64,000 nt of DNA. Origin: Ruditapes philippinarum (lineage: Eukaryota). A model generated the notes under the pieces. That model was not told the origin of the DNA, ran no database searches, and saw nothing but the letters and a program-made list of their open reading frames with translations. The stretch lies in NCBI RefSeq assembly GCF_026571515.1, contig NW_026863189.1, forward strand, positions 1-64,000. Direction: 5' to 3'. The position numbers were made by a program, and so were the translations under genes. How positions within the stretch are numbered: position 1 is the stretch's first letter; each line of letters opens with the position of its first letter. Shown here piece after piece: positions 3,082-31,631 of this stretch.

Positions 3082-4213
3082 CATTCCTGTCTGCCATGTT
3101 AACACAAATTAGCTTTTTGTTAATACCTTGGAAGTATACTTAAAAGTTATACGTTTTAACACTTTTTTGTAAATGAATTGATCGTTTGTGAATAAACAGG
3201 CGTTTACATGTTTATTTTATGGTGAACTTATTGTACAGACATCGCATTGATTTTCAGAATATTTATTTTCGTTGATATACGAGTAATAATACAAAAATGC
3301 TCTTATTAAAGGAGATGTTTCCTCTTAGCTGGTTTGTGATGCGATAACTGGTTATGTGCAATGGTAGATATTGATCTACGATATTTTTATATTTGGATTA
3401 TAGATTTGAAATATTGTGTGCTGCGCTAAGGTTTTAATGCCATGACTGTAATAAAGCAGTGTGTAATTATCTCCGTTCTTTTGGCGAGAATGGCTGTTCT
3501 TTTTCAGACTATAAGTTTCATTATTCCTGGATGGTTTATAACTGACTTAAGTTATGTCAGTGTTAATATGGCTGTTTGGTATGTGATTTTTTGTAATGAT
3601 GAACAAAATGGGACGTTTGTTGACTCATGTAAATCACTGTCATGTAAGAATTTTTTTCGGGAAGAATGGACACGTTCTGGCTAATTTAGGTAGGTGCATG
3701 TGTTATAAGGTGATAAGAATTGCCATACATATTAATTTCACTACGTCAAACCTAAATTTGTTTATATTCTTTCAAATTTCGAATTCTCTGGATAATAAGG
3801 ACAGCTGTGAGACAATCAGATAATGTAATTAGTGACTGTAATAAGATCATACACAAGAAGGAAATGAATTGTCTTCCTTCTGATTAATTGAAATAATGGA
3901 TGAGACAATTTGAAAGATTGTTGGAGAATTCTATTATGAGCAACTTGTATCTTATCGCTGTGGTAACGGAATGTATGTTTGCAAATCACAACTAAAATGT
4001 TAAAAGTCTTGAAATTGAAAGATTTGATTTGTTGTATATTTATATTTGATTCAATCTACTCAATTACAATGTTGTTCGTATTTAATATTTAAGACGTTTG
4101 TAATGCATGAATAATTAATATATTGTTTAGAATTAGGTCTTTATATTTATACATGACTTTGTAACTTATTGAAGTAAGACTCTCTTTTTATCAGTTGTTG
4201 TTTTCAAGAGATA
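3082..4213 (+). repeat. V1 cassette, duplicate of the V2 cassette (~6121-7304)
   Basis: Near-identical from ctgtctgccatgttaacacaaatt to tcagttgtt..aagagatac; flanked by a perfect 28-bp direct repeat. Confidence 0.9.
3442..3689 (+). pseudogene. Variable first coding exon V1 of the claudin-like gene, frameshifted
   Basis: ATG 3442, MTVIKQCVIISVLLARMAVLFQTISFIIPGW...VNMAVWYVIFC...DSC, paralogous to V3-V5. The homologous end (GKNGHVLANL, G|gtaggt donor at 3690) lies in a different frame: a net 2-nt deletion around the T run at ~3651-3657 gives TAA at 3682-3684. Confidence 0.8.
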
Positions 4214-6480
4214 CTCAATGAACATTTTTATTGTTTGTCAATATTTGAAAAACTTATGGAAAATGTGCCCATTGTAGACGAATTCTTTTCATATTTAAGT
4301 TAGACTTCTTTAGTAACTTATAGATTTAAATGCTAGAAAAAATATTATCTTTTCAAAGCGTAATGTACCAACAGAATGTATTAACATCAAAGACATTTAT
4401 GTTAATCTTGACATTTACAGGCAATTAAGCCTCATTAAAATGATTAGTATGAATTATCGTAAAGATTTCCGAACGGTTTGTTAAAACTTAATTGTTACGG
4501 TAATTTCACAAGAAGTAGGACATTTTATCTTCAAAGATAATTCCCCTTTTATAAAAATGTCTTTATATCTGACTTTCAAGACACGATTCTGAAGTCTCTT
4601 TTGGAGGCCGTTATATCTTTTTAATTTGTATGATACGTTCCAAAATGTCCCTAGCACTTTGTGAAATTTGAACGTTTTGATTGACTTAATGTTTAGTTAA
4701 AAAGCTCAAAATGCCCCCTGTAAAGCTTTTGTTTCTATTTCTCAAATGTTTTTTTTTTATTTATGGTATTATGTTATAGTTTCAAAGATACTCATTGGAC
4801 AATTATCTGAACACTCTTTCTCCACTGTTTCCTTTTGGCATGCAGTTAAGTAATAGTGATTTGATATTTTGAATGGAAGTCAAAATACTAATTTCTTTTC
4901 ACTTTGCTAAATACTTCATAATTGACTTTCAAGAAAAGATTCTCATGTCACGATTATAAGCTACTAGTATTCTTGAATTCGTTTTGAGATAATACTACCC
5001 TTACTATCTTAGACTGAAACAAAAACTTTAAAAAATTATCTTAGAAATTACACATTTTGGAATTCCTTATAACGTCATTATGGTATGAACCATAATTGTG
5101 ATTGAACCGCAATAACGTCTGTGATGAATTGGTTTGGGTCGTTGACTTTGACTTTGATGAACCCCTCGAGAACAAATGAAACAAACAAAAACAGTTGTAA
5201 ATCGAAGCTTTATCGTAAGCTATATTGAATCTGTTTAGAAGAGTAAATAAAAAGTGTAAGATCTTTCTTGCCCTTCAGCGGTATTTAACACTAAAATATA
5301 TTGGAAATAATATAATAATCCTACAAGCAAGATATAACAATACTAAGACTGAGTACGAAGCAACCTTTTACAGCTTTAGCACAGTAAAAACACATGTAAT
5401 TATGAGTATAAAATCTTTAAAAACGGAAATTTCTCGAAAATAGTTATAGTTCAAAAGTGCAAATTTGGTTTTATTGACTCTTTTATGAGAGATAATGAAA
5501 CATCTGTCAACGGCTATTTTATTCTTAACCCTAAAATGTTGGAAGCAATGATGCCGTACATGCAGTCAATGTTGTTGTATTTTACGAGAGATTGTCCGGC
5601 GTTCATTGTTTGTTGGTCCTATTCATGTCCTGTCTGCAAAGACTTCTGCCTTTTTATTCATTTTGTATGTTACACGCCTCTTGTTCGGGGTTCAGTGTCG
5701 GTGACTGGATTTTGCCAAGGCTGTGTTTATTGAATGCCGCCCTTCCTTATTGATCACCCATATTTTAATATACTTTATAGTTTATTGCAAGTGTGTACCT
5801 AGTCACTATAATGATTATTCTTGAAGAGTCGATATAATTAAAGATCTACAATAAACAAATGTGTTTGTGAAGGGGGATATTTTTCTCTATTATGATCAAG
5901 TGAATGTTATAGGTAATAGACAACTTTTTGAATGTATATATGTATATGTATATAAATAATCAAAACAAATAATGAATTACATCGACATTCCTTTCTGCCA
6001 TGTTGTAGGGAGATATTTTTTTCTAATAATCATGTGCAAAATTCTTCCAAGTTATAAATAAAAGACAATACATTGAATGCTCCACAATATACGTAACAAA
6101 TAATGAATTGCATCAAAATTTCTGTCTGCCATGTTAACACAAATTAGCTTTTTGTTAATACCTTGGAAGTATACTTTACAGTTATACGTTTTAACACTTC
6201 TTTGTCAATGAATTGATCGTTTGGGAATAAACAGGCGTTTACAGGTTTATTTCATGGTAGACTTATTGTACAGACATCGCATTGATTTTCAGAATATTTT
6301 CTTTCGTTGATATACGAGTAATAATACAAAAAATGCTCTTATTAAAGGAGATGTTTGAGTAATTTCCTCTTAGCTGGTTTGTGATGCGATGACTGGTTAT
6401 GTGCAATGGAAGATATTGATCTACGATTTTTTAAAATTTAGATTATAGATTTGAAATACTGCGCCTTGGTTTTAAATGCC

Positions 6481-6724
6481 ATGACTGTAATAAAGCAGTG
6501 TGTAATTGTCTCCGTTCTTTAGGTGGGAATGGCTGTTCTTCTTCAGACTATAAATTTCATTATTCCTGGATGGTTTATAACTGACTTACTGTCAGTGTTA
6601 ATATGGCTGTTTGGTATGTGATTTTCTGTAATGATGAACAAAATGGGACGTTTGTTGACTCATGTAAATCAGTGTCATGTACGAATGTTTTTCGGGAAGA
6701 ATGGAGACGTTCTAGCTAATTTAG
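6481..6724 (+). pseudogene. Variable first coding exon V2 of the claudin-like gene, disrupted
   Basis: Near copy of V1 (ATG 6481, donor tta g|gtaggt at 6725) with in-frame TAG at codon 14 (6520-6522), a small deletion after 'actgactta', and the same 3' frameshift as V1. Confidence 0.82.
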
Positions 6725-8115
6725 GTAGGTGCATGTGTTACGTTGATGTAAGGTGATAAGAATTGTCATACATATTAATTTCACTACGTCGAACCTAAAT
6801 TTGTTTATATTCATTCAAATTTCGATTTTTTTTCATTAGCTTTATGTTGATTCAATTCACCAAGCATAGTATTTGTCCCTGAATGATAAAGACAGCTGTG
6901 AGACAATCAGATAATGTAATTAGTGACTGTAATAAGATCATAAACAAGAAGGAAATGAATTGTCTTCCTTCTGATTAATTCAAATAATGGATGAGACAAT
7001 TTGTAATGATTGTTGGAGAATTCTATTATGAGCCAGTTGTATCTTTTCGCTGCGGTAACTGCATGTATGTTTGCAAATCACAACTAAAATGTTGAATGTC
7101 TTGAAATTGAAAGATTTGATTTGTTGTATATTTATATTTGATTAAATCTACTCAATTACTATGTTGTTCGTATTTAATATTTAAGACGTTTGTAATGCAT
7201 GGATAATTAATGTATTGTTTAGAATTAGGTCTTTATATTTATACATGACTTTGTAACTTAATGAAGTAAGACTCTCTTTTTATCAGTTGTTTTTTAAGAG
7301 ATACCCTTAGACTTTTATTTTTTATAGCCATTATTATAAACAATCAGAAAACATTTTCAGTCATATTCATACTATGTTTAATATCGTGTGCTGTGCAGTA
7401 ATAATACAAGATACCATTTAGAAATGCAAACTGATAGTGTAAATACCTTCCTTAAAAAAGATTACTCAACAAAGGATGGCAAGTGGAAAATATATTTCAA
7501 ACAAACTCATTGCATTGTTGTTGTTCTATAAATTATTTAACATCTACTTTTTTCTCTTTTATTGATTCTGCTTTCATAGTTGTTAGTAAACCATTCATTT
7601 CCACAAGCGCGAAATGAGATGGCTTTACGGAACATACACGAAAACGTTGGCGTGGGTGCTGCAGTTATGTTAAGTGAGTTATTTCATCAATGTTAATGAT
7701 GCCACTGAATTAATTGCTGATGCTTAATTAAGTATATTCTGCTGATGCAAGTTGTTGTTGCCAAGTTATTTGGTTTCTTGGTTTTATATATATTTGCATA
7801 GAATGCTTACATTAAAAGAGCTAATATCTAAAGGTAAGAGGTTCACATTAACCTATTTATAACTAAAATTGAAAAAAAATGTTCTGTTTTATTGTAATTC
7901 TAGGACTAATATCTGCAGCAAAACGATTATTCAAAATAATAAACTAATCACAATGAATAATGTACTATTTCGCGTTTTCAAATATAACGGATTAATTTTA
8001 ATGATATATGTGGGTGTTTGAGTATGTTTTGTTTTTCAGAGGGAAATTTGCTTTCAAGTCCACTTTACACCATACTTAACGATTTGCTTCATAAACTATC
8101 TTGTTTGGGGTTTAT

Positions 8116-8256
8116 NNNNNNNNNNNNNNNNNNNNNNNNNNNNNNNNNNNNNNNNNNNNNNNNNNNNNNNNNNNNNNNNNNNNNNNNNNNNNNNNNNNNN
8201 NNNNNNNNNNNNNNNNNNNNNNNNNNNNNNNNNNNNNNNNNNNNNNNNNNNNNNNN
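8116..8256. other. Assembly gap (141 N)
   Basis: Run of N. Confidence 1.
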
Positions 8257-9985
8257 TTTTAACTTTCTTTTGTTAAAGGTGCATTATTTACATTTCAATC
8301 AGAATACCCATCGTGTGAATTTTAATTGGAAATCTAACGGAATTTCAATGCTAGTTTATTTCTTGAACTTTATCGCAATGGTATCTTGTAATCTAGATTG
8401 TCAAATAAATAGTCTGGGTTAGCAGAACGTCAACAATAAAGTGGATGAAATGAAACATAGTCCCGCATGTATAATATTCTTTTAATATTCTGACTACTAA
8501 GATTATGCTGGCGACAGATCGTTTTATTTATAGACATTGATTAATGTTGGACATTACTACTCTGATTTTCCATATATAGTAAGAGAACGAAAATAGCTGT
8601 TCCAAAAAGTCCTTTAAAAGCGGACGCGAGTAATCTTCGTAAAATGACATGCCTGATACTTTATGTCTATAATTATTCAATAAATCATTTCCATAATACA
8701 CTGACCGATATCTGATCATCTTAGTTATTGTGGATAGGAAATTAGCTTTATAATCAGTTCGTTTCCCGAAAAGATCTATTCTCTCCTTATGTTTTGTGTT
8801 TTTTTTTACAAAAAAGGGAATGGAGGACAAAGATAATTAGCATAATTGCATCGGTTTAAAACATAATTCATCACTAGATTATCAAGTTTTGTATGCAAAT
8901 ATTGATATAAAATCAGAAATGAAAAAGTCTAAATTGAACTCTTCAACAAATAAAATTTTACTTAAAACTAAAAAACTGAAAGCATTTCCTATGTCATCCA
9001 TTGATTTGTTAAAATTATAATTACATTATAAAGATGGAATAGTTATGAATTTCAAATTATAATTTTTTCTGTTAAGAAATAGTTTATTTTGAAATTATGT
9101 GCAGTTAAAAAAGATATTTATTTTAACAGATGTTTGAACATGACATCATTATCACATGTAATTACTTACATGCTAGAACTATCATTCTTCTACCGGTTTA
9201 ACATTTCATTTGTCTGAACTTATTTTAAGACATTGTAAATATGCTGTTATCCTGCAGCAAACAAAATAAGAAATCTCGTTTATATCAAATACTGTGTTGA
9301 CTTTGGCTTCTCATTTATAGTTGGATTTTCGCGGAAACTTTAAATAATTCCTAATTGCCACCTTTGTAAGAATTATATGTTTGATTATTTTCAATAAATA
9401 CTCGTACGTAAAAATCTATTTGGTGCTTGAGAGTTTCGTTTTTATATAAAGAGCAAGAAATATAATAATCTGTAGATACTACATAGAGCTATGATTGTTG
9501 CACTGTTGATATGAAAACCTCTTAATACATTGCATTTAGATTCCGATTGGCAGTATTGTGCTTGTACAAACACATTGTTCACACGTAATTAGCTATATTT
9601 GTCAGAATCTTGGTAGTAGATTTTACAATCAAATATAAATCACTTCTTTGTTAATGATTTGTAGATGCGTGTATTAATGGCACACATTAAGTGAATTGTT
9701 CATTGGTGAATTAAACGGTCGTTTACAGTGATGTTGATTTTTTTTTCATAGAGAGCTTATTTTTTCGCTTCGCATCTCATTGATTTTCAGACTGCTATCG
9801 CTGCTTGTAGCCTTCGTTGATATAGTAATACTAGAATAAATAGCTTTTATTTATTAAATATGTTGTTTAGCTTATTTACTGTTATACGATGTGCAGAGTG
9901 CTTTGAGATTATGGTAGGCACTAAGATTTTCGACTTTTGGAATTAGTGTTGACATATCATAGTGAAAGCGCTTCTAATTTATGCC

Positions 9986-10235
9986 ATGACTCTTCTTAAG
10001 CAATGCGTAATATCATCCGTTATTTTAGCGGGAATGGCTGTTTTGTTGCAGACGATTTGTTTTATTATTCCTGGCTGGTTTATAACTGAAACAAAGGTTG
10101 TTAGTGTGAATATGGCTGTATGGTATGTGATTTTCTGTGAAAGTAAACAAAATGGAACTCTCAGTGACTCATGTGGAACAATGTCATATAAGGAATTATT
10201 TTCTGGAATAAATGGAAAGAATTTAGCACAATTAG
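9986..10235 (+). CDS. Variable first coding exon V3 (TM1 + extracellular loop 1) of claudin/PMP22-like tetraspan protein
   Basis: ATG 9986 (gccATG), open 250 nt to caa tta g|gtagtg (phase 1). Hydrophobic TM1, then PGW...AVW...C...C, resembling the claudin W-GLW-C-C signature. Confidence 0.8.
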
Positions 10236-11183
10236 GTAGTGTATGTTTCTTAACTTTAAAAAAGAGTAGACTCTGTGTTTAGAAAAAAAAGGAAATATAA
10301 ATCAGAGCAAAAGTTTGATACACTTTTTTATGAAAAAGTTTTGTTCATTATTATGCTAATGAATGTTGTGAATATTAGTATGTACATCATATTTCCTTTT
10401 TTATTTTTGTTTTAACGCTTTTCTTTCTGTCTTTATTCTTAGGACTTAAGATACATGCAGTATCTAAAGATACTCTTATAACAAAACAATCATTACTGTT
10501 GCAAGACAATTTTCTGATGATAACACTTCACAGATGAAGTTGAAATGAGTTTCCAATAACTTGAAGTTTGTATCAACGTAAACAGTTTGATACAATAATT
10601 TCCGTTATACTTAATTATTCTTTTCTATATCCAAAACACCATAAATAGAGGCATTTTTATGTTTATATGAAATTGTTTCAATATGTGACATATATATAAT
10701 TATTAGACTTTGTATTGATCTTAAAGTTATTTTTATACGGTCACCGTTTAACTGTTTATAATATTTTATGCCCACATAAAAGATTTTATGTAATTGGACC
10801 CTATTTGTGACGTCCGGAACTTAACGATGTTAATCAGATTTTAGCTAAATGCATAAATTATGCTATTACCCAATCAGATGTTTACATTTTAGCATGTGAT
10901 GTTACTAAGCCAATAGATAGGCAGATAAGCCATATCTTTGTTCATTTTGGCGTACATCGTTTTGTTGCCAATTTTCTAAAAGAAAAAATAACGTTTTTCG
11001 TAAGATATTCTTCGAGGAAAAGGTTAAATTACATGTATTATTTTACTTAAGTGAATAAGTTATCATAAGGATCTAAACTTTTAGGACGGCGACCCGTAAT
11101 TCAACCAGGCTTTGAGTTATATTGTGAAACGTTTAGCGAACATTTCGAACAAAGGAAATCCGGCTGGAAATTGGAATACGAAT

Positions 11184-11440
11184 ATGACTTCTGTAACATC
11201 ACAATCGACGGTTCTTAAAGTACAACTGTTTGGTCATTCCTTTGTGAAAAGGTTGCGACACTTTATTCGTCTTAATAACTCTTTTCGATATGATTTAAAA
11301 ATACAAGGCAATCCACTTGTTCAATATTCTGGCTTTCCCGGATCCACGGTTCACAAAATTAGGAACAATCCGGAGGTTGTAAAAGATTTCAGCCCGGATT
11401 TCGTTGTGCTGATCATTGGGACGATTTTCAAAATGTGCAC
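11184..11440 (+). mobile_element. Truncated SGNH/GDSL hydrolase-like ORF fragment, probably retrotransposon-derived
   Basis: LFGHSFVKRL ... SGFPGSTV ... PDFVVLIIGT resembles SGNH blocks I-III (GDS/GHS, G, GxND); it breaks off at block III. Confidence 0.6.
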
Positions 11441-14400
11441 TGTATGAATATTTCTAATGTTAAAGTAACGTCAATTTTTGGGTTAAATTCAATAGAAAGT
11501 CAATTCATTATAAATTTCCTTTACAAACAGTTTATTGATCTAAAAAAGACAGCTGCAAAACAACCATATAATGAAATTAGTGAATGTAATAAAAACATAC
11601 TTAAGAAGGAAATTGTTTTTCTCTCTGATTAATTCCAAGAGTGGACAGGATACTTTGTAGGACCATTGGAGCTATTTGCTATAAGAAAAATTGGAGGAAG
11701 AGTTTCGTTTAACCTATAAAGAAAAAGTGAAGTCATTTATTAAGCACAAATACCTAGCATTTTAATCTCCTGACTTGAAACAGAAGAATAGGATTTTAAT
11801 TCATATTTTACCTTAAGTTAGGAATGACCGCATTTCTTTTCGTTGTTTATTGTCCGAATGGTAATTTTAATGTTTGTTTTTTACTGCCAGATTTGTTGTA
11901 TTTTCATTATTTTTGTTATTGTTGCTGCTGTTTTATAACATTTGCTGTTGTCTTTTCTGTCGTGTTATGTTTGGTTTTAAGTGAAGGTAATATGGTGACT
12001 TTCTATCTGTGCTGAAGAAAAAAGGTACCAATGTTTAATGCTTGAGACATGAACAGGTAACCAGTTGGTACACCGGTCATTGATGCTACAGTGAAAATAA
12101 TTGTTTGATAATAAACGAAATTACGGATATACATGTATCAAAATACATTTCTTTAAAAAGACTTTGACCATAATTATTGTTATTCCTTTGTATATGTATG
12201 CATGTTTGTTGGCAATAACTTTCTGATATATATGATTTCCTACGGATAAAGATGTCATCCATAACTACCTTGTCAGATTAGATTATTGTCTTCTCAAGAA
12301 ATAAAAAAAACTGTTAGGATAGACAACCGTAAGTCAAAAGATATTGTTTTATGTTAACTACAGGATACAACATTGTAAACTTTTACATTGTAATGATGAA
12401 GCTGCATTATTGGTGAAACTATCTTTTGAAGATTAAGACCTTTGCTACGGTAATCAATAACTCTTTAGCGTGTTCAATAGCCTATTGATATTGTTAAAGA
12501 CTAATAATCAATAAACGCATTTGTAACCGTAGCACTGAAGGAAAATGTATTTGGTTAATATTATTCTATTAATTTATTCTATCATTTATATAAAAAGTAC
12601 ACTTGTTAATAAAATCGACATTTATGTTTAAACCACCCCCCCCCCCTTCCCCTTTTTTGAAAAAAATTCCCATTTAAAAATGGAAACCCCTTTTTTTTTG
12701 CCTCAAGCGGGAAAAGGCCCCTTCCCAAAAACCCCCTTCCCAAAATTTTTTTGGGTTGTTCCGGGTTTTTTCCTGGGACCGACAATCAACATCAAGGTCC
12801 TTTTTCCCTTAAACTTCATTTTTAATTTTCTAGAAAAGCCTCTTAATTTCAATAAAAATAAAAATTTAAAAGCGATATAAATCAAACATTTTTTAAAAAA
12901 ATGTTTTTTTGCCTTAGTACAAAATAAGCGATGGTAGATAAAATGCAAACAAATGATAAAAAGATGTATGTGTATGTCAGACGAGAAAACAATTTCCTAA
13001 AAATGTTACACTTCAGGTGTATACACAATACTAGTACTATTGTAACAGAACATGTATTTATCTTCTCATTCTTAACTCTTGACAATACGTGTTCGAGTAC
13101 ACTATTGTTTTAAGAAGTGCTTTATTTTCCACGTACACTTATTGTATATTATTTTCTGCTGATGCATAGTTTGAAATTGGCACTAACTGTTACATTTCAT
13201 CACTGTTTGCGCATACAGTCTAAAACTTAATTTAGTGGCGCAATATTGTTAACATTTTCCTGACGCTGTGTTTGTTGAATTCAAAGTGAAATAAGTCTGT
13301 GAAATGATATGGTATTTCTGTGTACATGCGTTGTTAAAAGGAAGTGTATTGGACAAACAATAATTTCCAAGGTCTACAAAAAACATTGTGAAACTTTAAT
13401 TGTAATGAGCACCAATTTATTGCATTATCTTTGCAAAATCGAGCATAGTCATTCAACCGTTAAGGTTATCAATTTTAATTTAATTCAGTTTTAATCATCA
13501 GAGAAGTTTGTTATTTAATATACAAATATATGAGCAAAATCGAATCTTCACTGTTATGTGCACGATTAGAACATATACGAAAATATCTCTTATCTCTTAT
13601 TAAGAGATATAATATACAAGAGAAAATGTTAATTACAGTACATACAATTGGCCACGAGTATAACAGAGACCAACACAAAGATATACTAAAACTCATACAT
13701 ATTAAGCAATGCATAATAATGAAAAACAATTCAAACACATATATAATTACTTTATACACATTTCAATTCAGTTAAACAAAAATCAAATATTTTCGTAAGT
13801 AATCTAATTGGATTGATTTAACTGCATTTTTTGCATGAATTTAACAATAATTTTACGCTAATTATATAGATTAAAATATTAAACAAACAATTTGATAAAC
13901 ATTAAACATCACTTTTCACCATTATAAATCAACATCAGTCGAGCTTTAAATATTAAGTATTAATAATGTAGTAAAAGTTTTGATAGTTTTACTACTATTG
14001 GTGTATGTTTATATTTAACAACCTATTTTAGGAAAAGTTATCAAATTCATTTAGATTAGAAATTCGTTACGACAACACGTCTCTAAAGATTTTAAAATTG
14101 TAATTCAACTTTGTAGTTATAACATTTTTATTGGCTTTCAAGTTAACACACTTTAATTTTCCTGCACAGTGGTTATCCGTGTCTCAAATGTTTTTGTAGT
14201 AGAATAATACTTCATTTACTGTACTTTAAGTTTTTTTTAATTTTCTTTAATTTTCGTTATTGTCCGTAAATGCCTGGACGTAGACTACAGTAATCAATGG
14301 TATGCAAAAGGTTTTATTCAAAACAATGCTCAGTTTAATAAAGGACTGAGGAATGAATATAGATAAATATATATACTTGTGTAACCTATGTCGGAGGAAA

Positions 14401-15350
14401 CTTTTGCATACCTACAAACGAAAATACAATTAAGTGGTACTTTCATGGTTGACAATTGTATACCACTTAAACCGGCGCTTAGAGACGTATGAGACGTTGC
14501 ACTTTCTATTGTTTTTCATTTGACAAAATTAATAACAATGAGCCTGCGATTTCTAAGTATCGAGAGTCCACTCAATTGATTTTATACGAGTATAATAACA
14601 TACATTTTATACATCGAGAAAATAAATTATAGATAGGTACTGACTGTATAAATTATGTCATATTGAGCATTGCCAAAATAGGCTAATTATGTTTATTCCT
14701 GGTCTGATCGGATTTATAGAATATGACAATAAGAGTATAAATGTGAAAAGTTTCTTATACTTGATTTCCCCCATTCAACATACTTTCAATTAATAACCAA
14801 ATGACTTAGTGATGTCATATTAATAGTTAAATGCCATTAGTTTTAATGTCTGAATGACTCAACACATTGTTATATGTTGTGAAATATTTCACTTTTCATT
14901 TACGGAATGCAAAAGGATAACATATTATAGATAAAACACAAAGCTTTGTTAATTGAAATGTTAAAATGACAACCTGTTTATTCATTGTCTGCCAAACAAA
15001 TGTAATACACTCTTATCTTTGTCAATTATTCACAAAAGTGTGTCTTATTGTTTAATATTCTAACGAATGAGAATCTTTCTTTTGGAACAAATTGGACGTC
15101 ATCAGTGTTGTATTCTTTCAATAGTCATCCTGTACTACAGACATCTCATTGATTTTCAGAGCACTGACACTGTTGCTTCCTTGATATAGTGGTTCTGAAA
15201 TAAGTAGCTATAATTATTAAAGAAGTAGATTTTCGCATTTTCCGTTTTACGATTTGCTGAGTGCTTTGCTATTATGGATTGTACTAGAATGTTCAGGATT
15301 TTGAAATTAAACTAAGCAATATCGTGTTTGAAGCGTTTGAAATTTATGTC

Positions 15351-15600
15351 ATGACACTTGTGAAGCAATGTGTTGCATCCTCAGTTGTTCTCGCAGGAAT
15401 GTCTGTTTTGTTGCAGACTATAAGCTTTATAATCCCTGGATGGTTAATAACTGAAACGAGTTGTTACAGTGTAAATATGGCTGTATGGTATGTGATTCTG
15501 TGTGCTGGTAAACAAAATGGAACGCTCAATTACTCATGTAATTCAATGTCGTATAAGGAACTGCTTTCTGGAAAGAATAAAAACAGTTTAAGTCAAATAG
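15351..15600 (+). CDS. Variable first coding exon V4 (TM1 + extracellular loop 1) of claudin/PMP22-like tetraspan protein
   Basis: ATG 15351, open 250 nt to caa ata g|gtaagt (consensus donor, phase 1); paralogous to V3 and V5. Confidence 0.83.
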
Positions 15601-17966: not shown

Positions 17967-20178
17967 TTTTCTTTTGTACAAAAATATTTTGGTTAAATTG
18001 AAAAAAAATGAAAATAAAGGCGATGTACCTGCATGTATATCTATATACAGAATTGTTTGAATGACAATATGAAGTGCAAATCGTAAGCGAAAGGACACAA
18101 ACATATAAAAATTATAGACATCATATCAAAAAAAGTCATAATAATAACAATCTACTCAGCAATGTCGTCCGATGACTAATCGTTTTCCGGAAATGACAAA
18201 GCATATAAAATCTAACTGAGCGTTGTAGCTTTTATATCTATCTACTCGTAAATTCAGTCTGATAGAATAATTACTACTTTTAGTAAGATTGAGCAGGAAG
18301 TAGCATTTGATTACAAGTAATTGTACAGATATATTCGGGACAATTACATTGAGGCTATTGGTTGATAATGCAAATAGGTAATAATTTAAAGTCTTTATCA
18401 TACCTTTCAAATAAAGAGTACATGTACAGTGCATGTGGTATTTCAAATAACTATATAGAGTTTAAAAGCAATCAATGTATACTTTTCCCACCATTTATTC
18501 GTTCACAAGTAGGGTTGCTATTCTACGTTGAAATATAAGGTTTCATGGTTGCACGATGCATATTAATTGAATAAAAAGAAAGAAGTGTTGCAATTAAGTA
18601 TAACGTAGGATTAATTCTAAAATGTTAGGAAGCAATAATCGCAATATGTTTTAAGCGGGCACACAGGTCGATTCAAATAGAACAAAGAGGCAAAAGGAAA
18701 TCTTTTCCTGGTTATTTTGCGGAGAAATCATTCTTCGGCCTATATAAAAACCTATACGAAGCGGGCAGTTTACTGTATTACTAAGGTATTGATTAATATC
18801 GGATCGCTACTCACTAAATGATTTTGCCTTATGTATATAGGTGTAGGAAAAAATAAATGAACCGGACGTCGGACATAAAGCGGAGGGTTATAATATAGGG
18901 AAAATAAGATAACAAGTAATTTATTTCTAAAGATATAAGAAACCCCGTTACAATAATAGTCTGGCAATTTATTATGCAAAGATTTACTTGTTCGTATTCG
19001 TTTTTTTAGACTCCAACCAGATATGAAGTACAAGCTAGGCAATTTCGATCCTAACTTCAATAATTTGATTTGCTCCGTGGCAGCATTTTGTTTGAAATTT
19101 AAGGAGCAAGTGCAATTGATAATTGAACAGACTATTGAGGACAAAAATTGAGAGTTGTGAAAACATAACGCTGAAGAATTTGTTATTGAAAGAGGACAGA
19201 AATAGAACACTGCAGTCCACCCAAGAATCATTCGTTGTTTTAAATCAAACAGATTAGAAAATCTGATAAAATACAAAGTAATGAATATATAAAACATTTG
19301 TTGTACGAACGTGCAAAAATAAAAGGATATAAACGTAAATATTTTAATCCCTAGCTTAAGAAAATATTTTCTTTATATAAACATATCATTCTGCATCTTA
19401 GAAGAAATAATACCACTACGTCTTTTAATATAAAAATGAGTTTTTGTGTAGACGTGATTCAATTTTAGAGAGAAAGTTAATTTGCAAAGCCTTTTTTTCC
19501 AGATTCAAGATTAACTGAAATGCGATGTGTCGTTATAAGAATGTAAAAGATTTTCCTGAAAAACAGTACTTAAATAAAAAAATTTCTTATATGACAATAA
19601 CTTTCATACGAATATCAATATCAATACAATCGCTACCTTTTTGACGGTCAATTTTACGTCGTACAAAAGGTTTATCTGTCTGTATGTCATATATAATGTT
19701 CATATGATACCTAATAGGCTTATATCTGTGAATATGTAATTAATTTGTCGGAAGACACTGTCCGCATTATCCTCTTACTTAATTAACTAGTCTACATATC
19801 ACTGCAAAATTTGAAAGTTGCTTCCTATGTTATGTCTACAATCTTCTAAATTAGTGAATAGCAAAGACGCAAATTTTCATAAACAACACATAATTCCAGG
19901 ATCCAGAACACATTTGTTGGAGGAAACGTTCTATCGTAATGAGATAGTTTGCCCATCCAACGCTTCCTTTCTTGTAGGAATGACTTGTTAACATCAAACA
20001 TAATGTTGTGATAACATGTTGCTTGACAGTTTTGGAGAAATATGGAAAAGCAATGATATATATTATTGAAAACATTTCCAAGATAAATTGCCAAGTTCAT
20101 GAACTACCATTGCCTGTAGAGTTCTGTCAATATTAAAATGTAATGAAAATAATTCCAAATGTTTATTTTATTGGTCAA
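17967..20178 (+). repeat. Segmental duplication, paired with 1-2235
   Basis: Same collinear alignment as for 1-2235. Confidence 0.92.
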
Positions 20179-20196
20179 AATACACATGTCAACACC

Positions 20197-22199: not shown

Positions 22200-22750
22200 C
22201 ATATAGAGGATATTTGTTTGTTTTGCGTGTAAGATTGAAATATAATTTCATTGAGTGAACACCAGTTGCAATATTTTCACGAGTGGCGTAGCCACGAGTG
22301 AAAATATAATAGCTGGTGTTCACGAATGAAATATAATTCAATCTTATATGTAAAACAAATAAATTTTCTTTTTATTTTATGCTTTTTAAGTGATTTTAAG
22401 TATTTTTTTACTGATTTTGCCGCGTAACGTCGTGCATTCTCCTTTGTGACGTCATTATATCATGACGTCACATCAACAGTTTTGAAATCTAGTTCCGTTA
22501 AATTTCACTAATTTTGTTAAATTTCTAACATGATGTATGATGACATTGACTTTCTTTTCCTAAAGAAGCAAAATATACGTATGGCGGCATTTATTTCTGC
22601 CTGTTATTCCATTTATTTATGATTTTCTGTTCATCCGCATTCAGATATAGTCCGGCTACAGTGAAAATTATATTTTATAAATTTCACTAGTGGTTTATCA
22701 GAATATAATCATCTGATATATTACAATAAAACACTGGAAAGCATGAAATA
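22200..22750. mobile_element. Non-autonomous element with a long internal palindrome
   Basis: Inverted arms ~22213-22367 (tttgtttgtttt..taagattgaaatataatttcatt..gtgaacaccag..ttttcac / gtgaaaa..ctggtgttcac..aatgaaatataattcaatctta..aaaacaaataaa) centred on gagtggcgtagccacgag. The 3' boundary is approximate. Confidence 0.6.
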
Positions 22751-23658
22751 AATACATTTGTCAATATCTATTTTTGAGAATTGAGTTTAAAATTCAGAGG
22801 TCAAAAAACTAGATGACCTATACTAAGTTATGGTTGATATAATGGAATAATGGAATGATCAAATCGTCGTCGTATGTATAACTATTGAAAGTAATGTCGC
22901 CAAGGAACAGGTTATTTTTTGCTTTAATCTGATAAAATCATTTGGGATATTTTATGTTAATTATTCTTTATTTTGCTGATTACATTTCAAACAGTCTTTT
23001 ATAAAGTAAAAGCGTTGTTGATTTAAATAATAGCACAATTTGTAAAGCATATGGCCACTCTTAACAACAAATAAGTCTTCTGTAATGTCTAAATGCCTTT
23101 GATAAATACATTGATCTATGGTGTGAGATATTTCTCTTTTCATTAATGGCGTGCAAAAAGATAACATATTACAGATAAAGCACATAGCTTTGATTATTGC
23201 ACCGTTGACATGGCAACATCTTTATACATTGCATCAAGATTCAGAACTGCCTAATTACTCAAAAAAACTATCTCATTGCTAACACAAATTAGCTTTTCTG
23301 TCAGGCTTTTAATAGTATATTTAACAATCAAACGTAAAACACTTCTTTGTCAACTAATGGAAGTGCTTGTCTCGCTTTCATAAAGATAGGGAGTATTGTT
23401 GACAAGGGAATAAAACGGACGTTTACTGTGTTATTTCATAGAGCGCCTATTCTGCAGACATCGCATTGATTTTCAGCATTGGTTGATATAGTAATACTGG
23501 AATAAATAGCTCTCAATGTTTAAGAAGCTGTTAAGGTTATTTTCTGTTCCATGATTACAATGTATTTTGCTATCATATAGTATGTTGGAATTGTCGGATT
23601 AATCTAAAAAAGTTTAAAAATTTTGATCTGGAATAGTGAAGGGTGCGTATTCTATGCC

Positions 23659-23911
23659 ATGACAGTTGTTAAAAACTGTGTAATTTTTTCCGTTCTTTTG
23701 GCGGTAATGTCTGTTTTGTTTCAGACGATAAGTTTCATTATTCCTGGGTGGTTTATAGCTGACACAAATTCTTTAAGTGTAAATATGGCTGTGTGGTATG
23801 TGATTTTCTGTGATGGTGAACGAAATGAAACTGTGTTCAGTGACTCATGCGAATCTATATCATATACACAATTATTTTCTGGACAAAATGGAGATAAGCT
23901 CGCTCGATTGG
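23659..23911 (+). CDS. Variable first coding exon V5 (TM1 + extracellular loop 1) of claudin/PMP22-like tetraspan protein
   Basis: ATG 23659 (gccATG), open 253 nt to cga ttg g|gtaggt (phase 1); nearest V exon to the constant exons. Confidence 0.85.
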
Positions 23912-26661
23912 GTAGGTGCATGTTGCTTTATATTATTAATCTTCCTGGTTGCTTGGAGAAAAAAGAACTTGCTAATACATGTTCAACGATTATAGATCAG
24001 GGCCAGGTGTCACGTGTGTGTAGTTTGAGCATATTTTTCCTATTACCATAAGAATAAAAAATTCACTGACATTCACTGACAATAGATTGAATCTTTGAGC
24101 ATTACAAGTTCAAAAGTGCATTAAACGAATTGAGCATATTAAGATTTGAAAAGTGTGCGTTATTATAAAATATGTATAAGTAACATAAAAGGAATGTTTA
24201 TAGGCCCATAGTACACAGCTCTTTCTTTCATGGATATGTTACATTGTGTTTCTATAAATAATATCTCCCCCTTGTGGGCAACAAAATTAAAGCCATCGTT
24301 TATGCCTGCATGATCGTAGGAAGCGCCTTAATGCAGGAACCTAAGTATTTTATAGCTCCAGCAGGTGAGGTGGTTTTGCACCTATGGAATTGCTCTTTAC
24401 CTTAAGTCATCTTTCCTGTCTAAATTGTGTTGATGCGCCGTAAAACCAAACAAAACAAGACAAGCATAAAATCTATAATGATTTGTCTACTCAATGATGT
24501 ATATGCTATACAATAATAGATGAACGTTAAATGGAAACCTCATATTGACACATTTTAAATAGACCTTTTGTCAGAGTATGTAAGATATTGTTCTTAATTG
24601 TGGCATGTACATGTATATAACGATATTATAACAAAGAAGGAGAAAAATACAACCGGCGCATTGTGCTAACTAAATACATGTTATACAGGACCCTTCTTTT
24701 ATTAATATAAAAGTAAAACAATTTATATTATTAACGCTTTTAAGGAAATTTGGGTCTTACTTAAGAATAATGAATATCAATATGCAAATAAGAATAGTAA
24801 ATTAAAACGAATTGTTGTTTTAGTCATTTTAATACAAAATAATGATACATACCAATAAATGTGCATTACTTTATTACAGATAAAATCTAAACGTGGTGAA
24901 ATAGGCCGAAAGCATATATGCTCTTAGAAGCACTTGAGAAAATGAATTCCTAAAGGCTTATATTCAATTAAAAATAACACTAGGATTGCTAAGTAATCTA
25001 ATATTAATAAGAAAAGTAATGCCATTATTGACGACATAAATGTGTGTAAAATAGAGAAACGGAAACCTCCCAAAAGAACCCTGAGAACTACAAAAAAATA
25101 AATAAACGTTGCAGACTCATTTTGATTGAGTCTGAACAAAGACGGTACTTGAAAGCCCCCCCCCCCTCACGTACCGGCTTAAGCAGAATTCATCATTTAA
25201 ACATGAATATTTGTGAAAATTTAAATTAAAGAAAATCCATAGATGTGTTTTTAATATCATAGAACCTTCGTTATAACACTTTCGTGCCATTACATAAAAA
25301 TCGGTGTATGAAAAGTCAAGAATGTCTGCTCACTGATTAATATCATTTCACAAAAAATAAGTATTTTCTTTTTAACATACAGAGAATTGTTCAAGATAAC
25401 AATAGCTTTACTTATTCCTTCTACAGATCTTTTGTAACTGTGAATAATGTTAAAGGTACAGCTGTGAGACACTCAGATAATGTAATTAGTGACTGTAATA
25501 AGAACATACAAAATAGAGAAATAAATTTCCTTCTTTCTGATTAATTCTAAGAATGAACTGGACAATTTATATGGACAGCCAGAGGATTATGTTTACAAGG
25601 AACTGACAGTGTTTCGTCACACTAATGAAATACATAAAACTCTTTTGTCTGGCATAGGTGCTTAGCGTTATGCGATTTATATAGCTGTACAGTTTATTTT
25701 AAAATTGATAGGCCTAAAATGGACATATTTTCCATAAATATTTAAAATATTCATAAAAATCATAGATATGGATCATTTGGATATTCTTATGAATTTTTGC
25801 TGGAAAAAAAGTTGATATGGTTTTGTTAGATTTAAGATGAGCTTTTATATCATGAATGCTACATTTTGTTCTAGAACATTTTATTATCTGTTGTATACAT
25901 GTAAATAAATACATGTTGTTTCGGATAATGAATCTCACACATGCCAGCAACATTCGTGTACAATTCGTTTGGGGTTTGATAAATTGTGAAATTGTTTGAT
26001 GAATTGTGTTGCATAAAATATGCATGATTTCTGAAAAAATCATATCCAAATCATTAAAATGATTGTGAATTCATGATTAGCAGTATTTGTTTACATAACT
26101 TCGTTATTAAGCGTGTGTCTTCTTGTAATTTGCTTTGTTACATTAACCAAAACAACTAAAGTTATTGCTTGCAAATGTGCTAGAATTCATAGAATTCACG
26201 GAAAGTGCAATATGTAATAATTATTGTTGGCGGATATATTGATAAATGATATATATTAGTCATTTGATTAATGTTTTATACCGACATTAATTGCCGAATA
26301 TAACGTGATTTATGATGAGTATAGTGCACATTTTGTTACGCTACCTAGCAACCCGCATTTCTCATATTTGCATGGAAAGATAAACCTAAATATGGACAGT
26401 TTGTCTAGGTCAAATCTTATCGATATACTAATAAGATTTATAAGATTGAATAATAACTGTAGCATATGCATATCAAACCACTTGGGAAACAATTATTGTA
26501 ATGGCAAAAAGTTTCATATTACACAACTTTTTTAGCTTTATTTACTATCATTTATTCCTGGTGTGAAACAAAAACATATTGCTTAATGTTTTAAACCTTC
26601 GTTTAGTTAAGTTCCGGTTTTAGCATATGTTTATATATTATTACAACTTTTCATATTCCCG

Positions 26662-26760
26662 TAAATTATACATGTATATGATTTTGTTTGTTTGTTTGTT
26701 TGTTTCAAAGGCGTAAAATGAAACAAACAAACAAACAAAATCATATACATGTATAATTTA
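26662..26760. repeat. Near-perfect inverted repeat (46/42-bp arms, 11-nt loop)
   Basis: taaattatacatgtatatgatttt(gttt)5ca ... tg(aaac)4aaaatcatatacatgtataattta. Confidence 0.9.
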
Positions 26761-29256
26761 AGTAAATGTATAATAAGTTAGTATCATTTAAATTCATCAA
26801 AGATTTATACAAAATCAATTTTCAGTCCTGAATTGACGCCTTTTTATTCATGTGGTTAACATGTAGTCTATCTTTAGGTGTATTTATCATTGTTTCCATG
26901 GCAACATTTTTTATTGTCTTTGCTTTTTCGCTTTTGCATTATTCAAATAATTGAGTTTGTCCTCGATGTCATATATCTGTATGCATGTGCAGACAAAGCA
27001 AAACTGAATTATGTCTATCAAACTGTATCTCTGTGATTTAATTAGCGAGTCTGCAGCACGTCTGCTGCACGTTGCTAACTAATGAATACACAAACAGATG
27101 TTGCATTTACATTTGTCTTAATAAGTGAATAACAAAAAGGATTTGTAGTTTGTTGTATGCTCAAAATAACGTATGAATACAGTTCAGTAAATTGCGAAGA
27201 GCGAAGACATTTTTATGTCTTTCTGGTTTTTTTTTGTTTTATTTTTTTTTGTTATTTTCTGGGAGCAACTAAGTTATCATCTAACAGTGAGATGAAAATA
27301 ATTTGGTTCTAGATAATTACTCAGAACTAGATAGCATAAATAATTTAGAAAATAATATCATGTATCTAATATTTTAAGTATTTACTTTAATAAAGCACTT
27401 ATGTTATCTTATCTACGATTAGATAACAACTTTTTATTACTCGTACATTTGTATTAATTTTTTGCCTGATGGCCTTTATCAAATAAGTGAAATTTATCAA
27501 GAAATGTCTAATATTAAAGTTTTATATTTTATCGTTTTTATAGTTATCAAAGTTACAATAATAATAATAATTTCAATTTAAGGTCATGAGGTCATAATGT
27601 AAATAAAATATATGATTTACAATAGAGATTTTATCATTGATGGTCTTTTCCAACTTTTATCAGCATATGAAATTATATTATTTGTTGTAACAATTAAAAC
27701 ACTTAAGGTATAAGCCCCCTAACAGGCACTATAAGAAACTATAAAATTGACAACATAGGTCAGTTAAGTACCTTAAAAGACACATGTATGCCAAATTTAA
27801 ACAAAGTTAACCGTATGGTTTACGAATTCTAGAGATTTTCCTTAACTTAAACTTGGCTATCACAAGGGCTCTTTTTCAGAAATGAGAAACTAAATAATCT
27901 ATAATATAAACATTATAAAAATTGTTTTCCTGTTGAACATTGTTAAGAAACAAAAAATAGCATTCAGCTAACAAATGGCACAAGCAAAACTATTGTTTCT
28001 ACTCTAATTGTTATAAATATGTATGAAAATGTTATCCTACCCTACCCATTTTAAATAGTTGTTTGACCATTGTCCTACTTGGCGGACCTTATTCAAAATA
28101 TCCCTAAAATATATCAAAATGAGAGACTGTTTTCCAAGTTTGCCTATTTTTTTTAAATTTTATTGGCTGAGCTTGTCAAATATAAACTACTTTTACCGTC
28201 TAGTTTTTACTACTTTATTAGCCTTTGAAAATATCAGGTGCCATATTTGTTAATAAATTAGAGATTTTTTCACATTTTTATTGCAATGTTGCAACGCTTT
28301 TAAATTGTGAGTCAATATTTCAAAATTACTGGAAAAACGAAGTGAGCGAGTGATCTGAAATTGTGCACACAAGTTTATGGAATAGACCTTCATTTATAGG
28401 TATATTTATCTTGAAAAATTATTTGCAATCCCATCATATAGAAAAACACTCAGTGGAGTCCCTTTAGAATAGTCATTCAAATGTATTGAGCGAACAATAT
28501 CCTACCATATCAATAAAAGTCAATTAATTATTTTCACAAATGATAGAACAAACACCAGGCTTTTTTGTAAATAGTATCCTTCCTTTTAAAAGATTACATT
28601 TCTTGATTTGATAGTTTTTGTAAGCATAGACATTTTCATTCTAATATTATAATCTATTGTAAATTAGAATTTACCATCGCATCAGCTACCTTATGTTAAC
28701 GCCAGGTTTCCTCATCTTTATTTTTTTTTTTTATTTTATTGAATCAAAGTTAACTTTGTTCATTTCTGTTATTTAAATTATAAAGTTAACATGTAAAACT
28801 TGAAGCGTATACCTTTGTGTTTCAAGTACTTTATAATTAACATTTTTGATTTTCTATTTACAGTTTGCATTCACATATTTCTTTTCTATCACTTGCTTAC
28901 CGTCATGTTCTATGCATATTTTATTAACCAGCTTTAGACTGGCGTTTTGCTTGCTATAATAGTGTAAACTCGGTTTTACGCTTTAGCGTTGATAATTGAG
29001 TATCCTTCATGTAAAGACTCAATCAAACCGAGTTGCAATTTCATGTTATTTTGTTGTAATAAATGCTTCCGAGCGATCACATTTTTTTCCAGATTGTTTT
29101 TAACAGCTTGCGCAGTCAGTTTTATAAATCAATCAAACTGAGCATGCAACATTTTGATGTTGCCGTTTTGTGTTTTCTTTAGGAATTCAAATTTTCGCTA
29201 CTTTATATTAAGATTATTTCACAATTTATCAGAGGACTTGTTTTGTATATTTTCAG

Positions 29257-29478
29257 GCGCAATGTTCACGTCAGTGGTTGGTACTCAAGTTCAAGTAACA
29301 GCATGTCTGATTTTGGCAGCTGGAGCTTTCATGCTTATCATTTTTCAATTTAAAACATTCCATCAGCAAACGCCAGGTCAACCGAGCATATTTGTTGACG
29401 AACCAAGAGGCACGTGTAATGTAAGGGCAAAGTTTATTTACAGCGGGGGATTTTCAGCAATATTTCAATTATTTTCAG
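29257..29478 (+). CDS. Constant exon C1 (TM2, intracellular loop, start of TM3) of claudin-like protein
   Basis: Acceptor ttttgtatattttcag|gc (phase 1, completes Gly), 222 nt: AMFTSVVGTQVQVTACLILAAGAFMLIIFQFK...FIYSGGFSAIFQLFS, donor tca g|gtaaag (phase 1). Confidence 0.85.
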
Positions 29479-31125
29479 GTAAAGTATGATCGTCTTTACG
29501 ATTTTTTTATTTGTTAAGATGTGGAGTGATATTATTACTATGCAATAATATTGAAAAAAAATAGAAGGGAATTTAGCATCAAATAGTTAATAAGCTAACA
29601 AATTAGCTTACAAATGTAATAAATCCTAAAATTTGACAGGCGCGTTTGGAATAAAGTTGATACAAGGTTTGATGATAATATTGTTTCTAATTATGTTTGT
29701 ACTGTATAACTGTAGAAATATATTTATTTGATGTGTATATTCACAACTTGGGCTTACAGAGCATATCTTAGAATATTCGACTCTAACATAATTCACATTA
29801 TATGACTTTTTAAATAATTATTATCGCTTATTTTAATAAAATCTGGCAATATTTATAAAATTCATACCCGATTGACTTTTTGCTTAAAAATATATAAAAA
29901 AATTGAATTTGTTTTTTTGTTTCTTTTTTTTTAGTGTCTTTTTTTTAAGCTAGGTACAATGAAAGACTTTATAAGTCATCCATGTAGTATTTCGTTGTCA
30001 GTAAATTCGTCCATGTAGGTGGCTGAATTTTATTAAAGACCCACACACTCTGAAAGTCTTTCAGTTTGATATCCAAGGGAGGGCAACTCCTTTACACAAA
30101 TTTAGAAGAACAAGGATAAAAAAGATGAAATTTTTTTTGATAGCTAACACGCAAATCTATTATATAATAAGTATTGTTAGTTTATATTTTATTACACAAA
30201 AGCTTACATAAAGTGTGTTAATGGTTACACGTAGGAATCCAGAACACTGCTTCATAAATAATAAAAACATATTATGAAAAAGTCATGATGTAAAAAATAA
30301 ACTTTAAGCTTTAGTCAATTGTTTTTCCTCCATTTTTACGGAAGGGGTGTTGCGATCTTATCTTCCTTTTATACTTTTAATTGGCAAAAAAAAACAAGAG
30401 TGTCGTCTCGCCAAACTTGTTTTTGTTTGTAGCCTAGCTTCGGTATTTTGTTTGACAATAAAGTCCCGTAAAATTTAAACGGACTGTTTAAAACTCAAAC
30501 CAGGAAACATTCACTAAATAATTTTTGCAGGTTCAGTGTTAAATGAACGATTTTTACATAGAAAAGATATCGAGGTCAATGGCATACGATACCAGTGATT
30601 GTTAATGTCAGGCAAGAACTCTTGGCTACTCAATCCAATTACTGTTGCTTGTTTCTAGTAATTGACTGGACAGCTACCGTCTCGGAAATCTTGTCTAGTA
30701 TTAATTCTGGAAATTCGCCATTTGACCTGAATGTATTATGAAGACTTATTCCTGCTAGATCATTGACTAGATTATTGACTGGACTATTGAGAATAGATAT
30801 ATTTGGTGATTTATTTTCAAGCGTAGAATCAAAGCAAAGTTCACTTTTTTGTGTCAACAGCAAAACCATTTAACACATTCCAATGTGTTTATTGAAGAAG
30901 ATATTTTTAATAATATTTGTTAAAACCCATGTTTAATTATTTTATAATTTGTGATATTTTAATAAATAAAAATGATATTTCCCTAATAAAATACAGGAGT
31001 TTAGTTTCATGGTAAGAAGAGTAATCTAAAAACAGTTATTTCTCTGTTTAGATATTTATGTATCTATGTTAACTATTTATATGTTTTAATCACATGGATT
31101 GTATCTTATATTAAACTGATTTCAG

Positions 31126-31631
31126 GTATTTTACTCGGTCTGGTTATCATAGACTTCGGCAAGAAGTATTACGCCTTGGGCAAGCCAAGGCCAGCAATTC
31201 CGTATACATTATTCATCGCGGGAATAGGAGCTGCGTGCTCTGGACTTTGTGGAATCATTGAGCTAGCGATAGCCTTCCGGACAAAAGAGAACGGTAGCCG
31301 ACGCTCTAGCAATGCGGCAGATAAACACTGTTCTCCGCAGCAACTTATACCTCTAAATCAAGTTCAAGGTCAAGGTAAAGGTCCCCATCATCATCACCAT
31401 CATCACCATCATCATTATGATAAGCAAGCCAGAACGGTATCTCTGGATGATGGAGATTATTATGGACAAGATTATGATGTAGAAAATCCGGCATTTCATA
31501 CACAGGGTGGAAGGAAATCTGATGCATCCAGCTCACTTTTTCCAGGATATAGACTAGGTAGACAAAATTTACAAGGACATGACAAGAAGTGGTGGAGAAA
31601 AGTAACATTTGCAGCGTTTACAGTCTTGTAA
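31126..31631 (+). CDS. Constant terminal exon C2 (end of TM3, loop 2, TM4, cytoplasmic tail) of claudin-like protein
   Basis: Acceptor aaactgatttcag|gt (phase 1) reading GILLGLVIIDFGKKYYALGKPRPAIPYTLFIAGIGAACSGLCGIIELAIAF..., in frame with ORF 31176-31631. His10 tract; ends AAFTVL-stop. Confidence 0.87.

Follow-up and report, generated by a model that had tools for sequence, protein, structure and literature searches.

Tandem variable first exons upstream of a single constant region in a gene for a predicted claudin-superfamily protein of the Manila clam, Ruditapes philippinarum

The stretch of DNA analysed here (the window) comprises 64,000 nt at the start of the 245,520-nt contig C11676 (C11676:1-64000) in the assembly of Ruditapes philippinarum (1.41 Gb, 15,874 contigs), has a G+C content of ~30% along its whole length and carries a gene that RefSeq lists as LOC132721427 under the name ‘uncharacterized protein’. 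We consider it likely that this locus is one gene, in which an array of variable first exons (V exons) precedes a single pair of constant exons (C1 and C2), and in which each mRNA contains one V exon and encodes a four-pass membrane protein of the claudin/PMP22 superfamily. The V exon would supply the start codon, the first transmembrane helix (TM1) and nearly all of the first extracellular loop (ECL1), and C1 and C2 would supply TM2 to TM4 together with a conserved cytoplasmic tail; one V exon would be spliced directly to C1 in the mature mRNA, any V exons lying in between being removed with the intron. A preliminary description of the window had proposed that one locus yields proteins with a swappable ECL1 and an identical tail, and this agrees with the two RefSeq isoforms, which are V3+C1+C2 and V5+C1+C2, and with a junction between a V3-type exon and C1 that was found in RNA.

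Both RefSeq isoforms were modelled automatically as products of alternative first exons. Isoform X1 (XP_060561717.1, 326 aa) is composed of V5 (residues 1-84), C1 (86-158) and C2 (160-326), and isoform X2 (XP_060561718.1, 325 aa) of V3 (1-83), C1 (85-157) and C2 (159-325); our exon translations agree with both proteins residue for residue at the expected offsets. The split codon is GGC when V3, V4 or V5 is joined to C1, and GGT at the C1/C2 joint. The product lengths of 325-326 aa that had been predicted for V3, V4 and V5 thus correspond to the RefSeq proteins for V5 and V3, and the V4/C1 split codon fits as well. C1 and C2 are present in one copy each in the window and in the whole assembly, which confirms that there is only one set of downstream exons and none between the V exons; the possibility that each V exon has constant exons of its own, hidden from view, was not borne out in this assembly. 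The 3' untranslated region (UTR) of C2 extends to ~32.4 kb.

The five V exons of the window are paralogous (tblastn E 1e-14 to 1e-53; blastn identity 70-88%), and each opens with an ATG (Table 1). V3, V4 and V5 have an open frame and end at a homologous G|GT donor in phase 1, in agreement with the lengths and phases given for them previously, and the phase-1 donor of every intact V exon would fit the single C1 acceptor. The earlier view that all five exons encode TM1 and ECL1 and end at the same donor therefore stands as regards the paralogy of the five and the integrity of V3 to V5, but V1 and V2 are pseudo-exons. As both carry an identical 2-nt deletion, they were duplicated after inactivation. 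The assembly gap between V2 and V3 has flanks whose order and orientation match those found in the paralogous block of another contig, C2490, and since it cuts no exon the reading frame is unaffected. At every V copy, in the window as well as on contigs C2490 and C7290, a two-codon upstream open reading frame (uORF; ATG-YCA-TGA) is conserved whose stop overlaps the main ATG (ATGYCATGAC) and which may be a feature of translational control.

Table 1. Positions of the constant and variable exons, associated elements, upstream V copies and neighbouring genes (window coordinates unless a contig is named)
Feature	Position	Strand	Remarks
C1	29257..29478	+	TM2 and intracellular loop; acceptor takes phase-1 donor; single copy in genome
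C2, coding part	31126..31631	+	end of TM3, TM4, conserved ~115-aa cytoplasmic tail, TAA stop
V1	3442..3689	+	C-type pseudo-exon; 2-nt deletion gives frameshift and premature TAA before donor
V2	6481..6724	+	C-type pseudo-exon; TAG at codon 14, 4-nt deletion, also the 2-nt deletion of V1
V3	9986..10235	+	D type, intact, 250 nt, phase 1; Met, TM1, ECL1; RefSeq isoform X2
V4	15351..15600	+	E type, intact, 250 nt, phase 1; dN/dS 0.27 versus V3
V5	23659..23911	+	F type, intact, 253 nt, phase 1; RefSeq isoform X1
19-nt element of V1	3239..3257	+	ACATCNCATTGATTTTCAG; 185 nt before V1 ATG
19-nt element of V2	6274..6292	+	pattern match
19-nt element of V3	9772..9790	+	1 mismatch
19-nt element of V4	15141..15159	+	pattern match
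19-nt element of V5	23458..23476	+	pattern match
uORF/start overlaps	3437-3445, 6476-6484, 9981-9989, 15346-15354, 23654-23662	+	ATGYCATGAC
Assembly gap	8116..8256	.	V2-V3 spacer; 1.39 kb past V2 donor, 1.73 kb before V3 ATG
Second assembly gap	32978-33139	.	after 3' UTR of the claudin-like gene, before Cys-loop array
Cys-loop receptor genes	41136-42374, 45620-46879, 51398-52474, 55372-56622, 60902-62152	+	Neur_chan_LBD (E 1e-28 to 1e-39), Neur_chan_memb
V copies on C2490, in transcription order	C2490:63310-3506	-	A1 intact; B with in-frame stop; B 5'-truncated; C intact; C broken
V copies on C2490, order continued	C2490:63310-3506	-	D1 intact; E broken; C split by insertion; D2 intact
V copies on C7290			A2 and B2, both intact

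Splicing of a V exon to C1 was observed in assembled sequencing runs. The C2/3'-UTR stretch was present in 20 runs, 14 of them presumed to be RNA (each ~54-205 million letters of contigs), and the contigs of four runs were aligned to window:23510-29500, from V5 to C1. All four behave as RNA, the intron bins being mostly empty, and splicing of C1 to C2 is evident from loose ends past 29481 that correspond to the first letters of C2 (runs X1 and X4). Two contigs of run X4 carry 18 loose letters (AAAGAATTTAGCACAATT) before 29255, which together with the shared AG reproduce the exact 3' end of V3; this sequence is otherwise present only in D1 of C2490, and differs in D2, V4, V5 and all other types. 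As a V3-type 3' end thus adjoins C1 in RNA contigs, splicing joins a distal V exon of the D type straight to C1 and passes over V4 and V5 at the least; this fits the first of the V-to-C1 junctions foreseen in the preliminary description. The V5 exon and its 5' flank were covered in run X4 at a depth of 3-5, versus 65-102 on C1; use of V5 is supported by this low coverage and by the RefSeq model. In run X1, the C1 contig starts exactly at the V/C1 junction, a break that would be produced by a branching de Bruijn graph if several V exons feed C1.

Two further features were noticed in the RNA contigs. A variant of C1 with four linked letter changes (29297, 29324, 29342 and 29408; 1.8%) was present in runs X4 and X10, and is probably a second allele, the alternative being an unassembled paralogue. 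A 35-nt intronic segment at 25173-25207 reached a depth of 428-1860 in contigs and ~2,700 raw reads, with loose ends at either side and joints to 29008 and 29129 on the opposite strand (also ~29001-29033). It gave nothing in Rfam, and has the appearance of a piece of some abundant transcript that derives from a repeat and does not belong to this gene.

Further V exons, which the preliminary description had suggested might lie upstream of the window, were indeed found when the genome was searched in six frames with V5: 11 additional copies, six of them intact, are located on C2490 (nine copies) and C7290 (two copies). This brings the total to 16 copies on three contigs, uniformly oriented within each contig, of which nine, of six sequence types (A to F), are intact and seven dead. 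The lengths of the nine intact exons (238, 250, 253 or 256 nt) are each one more than a multiple of 3, and every one of these exons ends at G|GT. Read in reverse complement, C2490 aligns collinearly with the window (74-90% identity), shows the order C, C, D, E once more and ends in sequence homologous to window position ~13.4 kb. A segmental duplication relates window positions 1-2238 to 17967-20182 (85% identity), the start of the contig being the homologue of the stretch that follows V4. From the collinearity, the end point at ~13.4 kb and this homology of the window start, C2490 probably lies directly upstream of the window, one E-type exon having been lost in the break. Weak V-like matches were also found on C7507, C4948 and C13650. 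One V copy on C2490 (locus L036, C2490:53145-53309, minus strand) is 5'-truncated behind an A-rich insertion, and an environmental open reading frame (ORF), P0038, resembles it in its 3' part and intron read-through and has an intact 5' half; on comparison of the two, the V array may be structurally polymorphic between individuals. With respect to other features of the locus, Rfam gave no match over the whole window, an ORF of 175 aa at 18770-19297 (minus strand) matched no Pfam family, and no family could be assigned to the other ORFs of ≥100 aa within the locus.

The ratio of nonsynonymous to synonymous substitution rates (dN/dS) lies between 0.17 and 0.56 in all 36 pairs of intact V exons and, when pooled over the six types, amounts to 0.15 in TM1 and 0.45 in ECL1. 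Identity among V3, V4 and V5 falls from 72-79% in the exons to 59-67% in the 5' flank and 45-51% in the first 200 nt of the intron. Based on these values, the intact V exons are maintained by purifying selection, and the loop is freer to change than the helix. The idea that V3 and V4 are neutrally evolving orphans was thus not borne out, dN/dS being below 1 throughout and a V3-type exon being spliced to C1. Invariant in the V exons are, among others, P29-G30-W31, N42-M43-A44, W46-Y47-V48, C51 and S63-C64, and an N-x-T site at residue 56 occurs in all types but B. The net charge of the loop varies from -5 in the C type through -4 in V5, 0 in V3 and +2 in V4 to +4 in A1. In vertebrate claudins, ECL1 sets paracellular charge selectivity and trans contacts. 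Exchange of ECL1 in the clam protein, with its range of net charge from -5 to +4, would alter extracellular specificity and leave intracellular coupling constant.

Several observations weigh against a single gene that uses its whole array. With seven of the 16 copies dead the array is partly decaying, the contigs C7290, C2490 and C11676 are not physically joined, and the 18 loose letters of run X4 fit V3 and the C2490 copy D1 alike. In the region aligned for the four runs, the expected V5-C1 joint did not appear above the listing threshold, and no RNA support was found for V4 or for any V exon of C2490 or C7290. The locus could accordingly be a gene with two isoforms, using only a V3-type exon and V5 in the manner of CLDN10a/b, with V4 and the copies on the other contigs being relics of a decaying duplication. 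Such a gene would account for the broken copies and for the presence of only two isoforms in RefSeq, and full-length isoforms with V4 or with an A, B or C exon are absent from the protein collection, the other V matches being V-only ORFs that read into the intron, i.e. the genomic form. However, V4 and exons of types A, B and C retain the ATG, the open frame, the phase-1 donor and an upstream element, with dN/dS of 0.2-0.5; the A and B lineages are still intact although they seemingly predate the split between Ruditapes and Mercenaria; and the break of the C1 contig in run X1 at the V/C1 junction is what several upstream partners would be expected to cause. We therefore regard a two-isoform gene as unlikely, and prefer a gene in which use would extend to V4 and to the intact exons of types A to D on C2490 and C7290. 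Still less probable in our view is that the copies on C2490 and C7290 do not belong to this gene at all, but represent divergent haplotigs, mis-assemblies or paralogous genes whose constant exons were not assembled. The fragmentation of the assembly (~15,900 contigs), the ~4% heterozygosity of R. philippinarum (PMC9803972), the lack of joins between the V-bearing contigs and the C1 variant seen in RNA could be cited in its support. Yet the identity of 74-90% between the blocks is far under the allelic level and too low at this heterozygosity, for which reason a haplotig origin was rejected, and the four changes of the C1 variant in 226 nt are compatible with allelic variation. Moreover, C1 and C2 are absent from C2490 and C7290, with ten V copies listed over 60 kb of C2490, and the window by itself has one constant region behind V3, V4 and V5, all of them intact.

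As to how one V exon is chosen, each V exon of the window is preceded by a 19-nt element (ACATC-N-CATTGATTTTCAG) that ends 183-196 nt before its ATG, and the five occurrences in the window compare with 0.02 expected. In the 1.4 Gb of the genome, 13 matches were found when up to one mismatch was allowed, 10 of them before V exons of the C to F types. Each V exon also has its own ATG, and several hundred nucleotides of 5' flank were duplicated alongside it. The element could be a promoter element resembling the conserved sequence element (CSE) of protocadherins, and choice through alternative promoters, one per V exon, as in the protocadherin and UGT1A clusters, is the mode towards which we lean. 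What speaks against it is that the element ends, ~190 nt before the V exon, in an acceptor-like TTTTCAG; by the classical rule, V exons have no 3' splice acceptor. Selection could instead take place by splicing, a shared non-coding leader being joined to the TTTTCAG of one V exon and that exon to C1, in the manner of the mutually exclusive exons of Dscam. The most conserved piece of the V flanks ends in TTGATTTTCAG, resembling the real acceptors of C2 (CTGATTTCAG) and C1 (ATATTTTCAG); an AG is found at the same spot in the A and B types as well, and a contig of run X4 runs 106 nt upstream of 23510, past the CAG at 23476. This contig is possibly just collinear with the genome, no leader exon was seen, and the conserved block of at least 19 nt is longer than an acceptor requires and could be the CSE-like promoter element. 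Taking into account also the separate ATG and the co-duplicated 5' flank of each V exon, we hold choice by splicing to be possible, although rather doubtful, and retain alternative promoters as our working model.

The assignment of the protein to a superfamily is based on embedding and predicted structure. No Pfam family scored above its gathering threshold with single exons, full-length RefSeq isoforms or orthologues, the superfamily models considered being PF00822, PF13903, PF06653 and PF10242; the best match was Claudin_3 with the orthologue from Mya, which spanned the whole profile but reached only E = 0.052 and 13.9 bits versus a cutoff of 28.7. A profile search of PDB sequences gave no match. 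AlphaFold2 models had mean confidence scores (pLDDT) of 41 with a 6-sequence alignment, which was unusable, and 46 with a 23-sequence alignment. These results count against membership in a recognized family, whereas the second AlphaFold2 model, poor as it is in three dimensions, shows TM1, four strands, a short helix and TM2-TM4 in the order seen in claudins. With this model, the top 50 matches listed by Foldseek against the PDB were all claudins, TARPs, GSG1L, LHFPL4/GARLH4 or the Cav gamma subunit, with a best E of 2.7e-3, probabilities of 0.94-0.99 and low template-modelling (TM) scores, no match reaching E ≤ 1e-3. In the ESM Atlas, the neighbouring clusters of isoform X1 and of the Mya orthologue (46% identical) that bear a Pfam family belong to claudin, PMP22, LHFPL or Clc-like families (feature scores 0.86-0.89), and the predicted structures have TM scores of 0.66-0.74 to claudin-34, claudin-12, PMP22, Clc-like, GSG1, TMEM204 and clarin-3. 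W31, W46 (after A44 and V/L/I45), C51 and C64 are invariant in the nine V exons and the orthologues. Judged by these models, the protein very likely belongs to the claudin fold superfamily, as a divergent and lineage-restricted member. By its sequence features it is not a classical claudin, since ECL1 has the spacing W-x4-C versus the W-x2-C of the claudin signature W...GLW..C...C, the tail comprises ~115 aa, and the C-terminus is TVL (LYL, PYL or PYY in the orthologues) and lacks the PDZ-binding YV. The term ‘claudin-like’ used previously is therefore appropriate at the level of superfamily and fold, as indicated by embedding and predicted structure, but not at that of the Pfam family, where scores stay below threshold, and the ECL1 motif differs in its spacing. 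A run of ten histidine codons at 31386-31415, in the cytoplasmic tail, is shorter or absent in the orthologues; a Pfam match to SelP_N was dismissed as spurious, being due to this poly-histidine tract.

In the sequence searches, the exons were used as queries one by one, the full-length queries being the database proteins P0024 and P0022, and a profile of the nine V exons was compared with 1.84 billion representative proteins, which yielded 18 matches at E ≤ 1e-3. Full-length orthologues were found in Mercenaria mercenaria (LOC123563561, 79% identity to isoform X2), Mactra antiquata (60% to isoform X1) and Mya arenaria (MAR_029594, 46% to isoform X1), and Dreissena polymorpha LOC127866482 is an orthologue too. 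All named orthologues are from heterodont bivalves, and the constant tail is strongly conserved among them. Many other matches are V-only ORFs that run into the intron, on anonymous contigs; P0037 represents a V type missing from this assembly, and P0039 and P0041 have the N-terminal signature of the Mercenaria V exon. A metagenome scan for V exons returned one contig of 1.65 kb, which carries just one V exon, preceded by no element that could be recognised. The tree built from 25 V sequences (83 columns) separates an A clade (support 100/100) from a B clade (98/97) and places the Mercenaria V exon with types C to F (84/80). The B clade includes the V-only ORFs P0007 and P0040, whose origin is unlabelled and which possibly come from another species. 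If so, the B clade, together with the position of the Mercenaria exon within the C to F grouping, suggests that at least three V lineages are older than the Ruditapes/Mercenaria split, as far as can be read from 83 columns and anonymous sequences without a species label.

Directly downstream of the claudin-like gene are five tandem single-ORF genes for Cys-loop receptors, copies of one another at 79-96% DNA identity, and fragments at 33966-37406 resemble the downstream portions of these genes. The five-gene array agrees with the known expansion of nicotinic acetylcholine receptor genes in molluscs (PMC6896357). As regards function, a long shot is that heterodonts possess a ‘clustered claudin’, i.e. 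a long-lived array of at least nine functional TM1-ECL1 exons chosen per cell or tissue, which would confer distinct surface or paracellular identities in epithelia or neurons; if true, it would be the tetraspan analogue of the clustered protocadherins. More speculatively still, the isoforms could be interchangeable auxiliary subunits of Cys-loop receptors, an idea based on the structural neighbours TARP, GSG1L and LHFPL4/GARLH4 (the last acting on GABA-A receptors) and on the five Cys-loop genes downstream.

A literature search on the locus identifiers, the orthologues and variable first exons in molluscs found no paper, and neither the array and how far it extends, nor the pattern of selection on it, nor the claudin-fold nature of its product is described in the literature searched, the two isoforms being already present in RefSeq without comment. 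Variable-exon clusters are a rare route to cell-surface diversity from one locus, and if there is regulated use of several V exons, junction or receptor properties would be tuned by exon choice and not by separate genes.

Among known systems, variable first exons joined to constant exons characterize the UGT1, GCNT2 and PCDH clusters (PMC3325998, PMC1885805). The clam locus has tandem V exons in one orientation upstream (five copies in the window, 16 in the assembly), the intact ones each with its own ATG and a fitting donor phase, and single-copy constant exons, and different V exons are spliced to C1 according to the V3-type RNA junction and the V3 and V5 isoforms of RefSeq, so that the comparison with protocadherins and UGT1A made in the preliminary description holds. 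It shares with Pcdh, UGT1A and GCNT2 the tandem paralogous V exons with start codons of their own, the one constant set and the short conserved element upstream. It differs from Pcdh and UGT1A in that its V exons contain only ~250 nt of coding sequence, for one transmembrane helix and one loop, are preceded by an acceptor-like site and include many pseudo-exons, and in that a promoter per V exon is a proposal from sequence features. In chelicerate shortened Dscam (sDscam), alternative 5' cassettes are joined to constant exons (PMC9258826), with promoter choice and trans-splicing documented. This is likewise an invertebrate cell-surface protein diversified by alternative 5' cassettes and constant exons, but it belongs to the immunoglobulin superfamily and has 50-100 isoforms, and the clam protein has a predicted claudin fold. 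Closest in kind are claudins with alternative first exons, of which CLDN18.1/18.2 are one pair. CLDN10a and CLDN10b also differ in the first exon, 10a being an anion and 10b a cation channel (PMC7642450), so that the arrangement is not without precedent among claudins, although the preliminary description knew of none. As in CLDN10, a tetraspan of the claudin superfamily occurs in isoforms that differ only in the first exon, encoding TM1 and ECL1. CLDN10 has two such exons, whereas in the clam at least three are intact within the window and nine across the assembly, besides seven dead copies, and its protein is not recognisable by Pfam, has the ~115-aa tail and lacks a terminal YV. The clam locus is thus the CLDN10a/b arrangement enlarged to an array, and takes its place within the variable-first-exon/constant-exon clusters.

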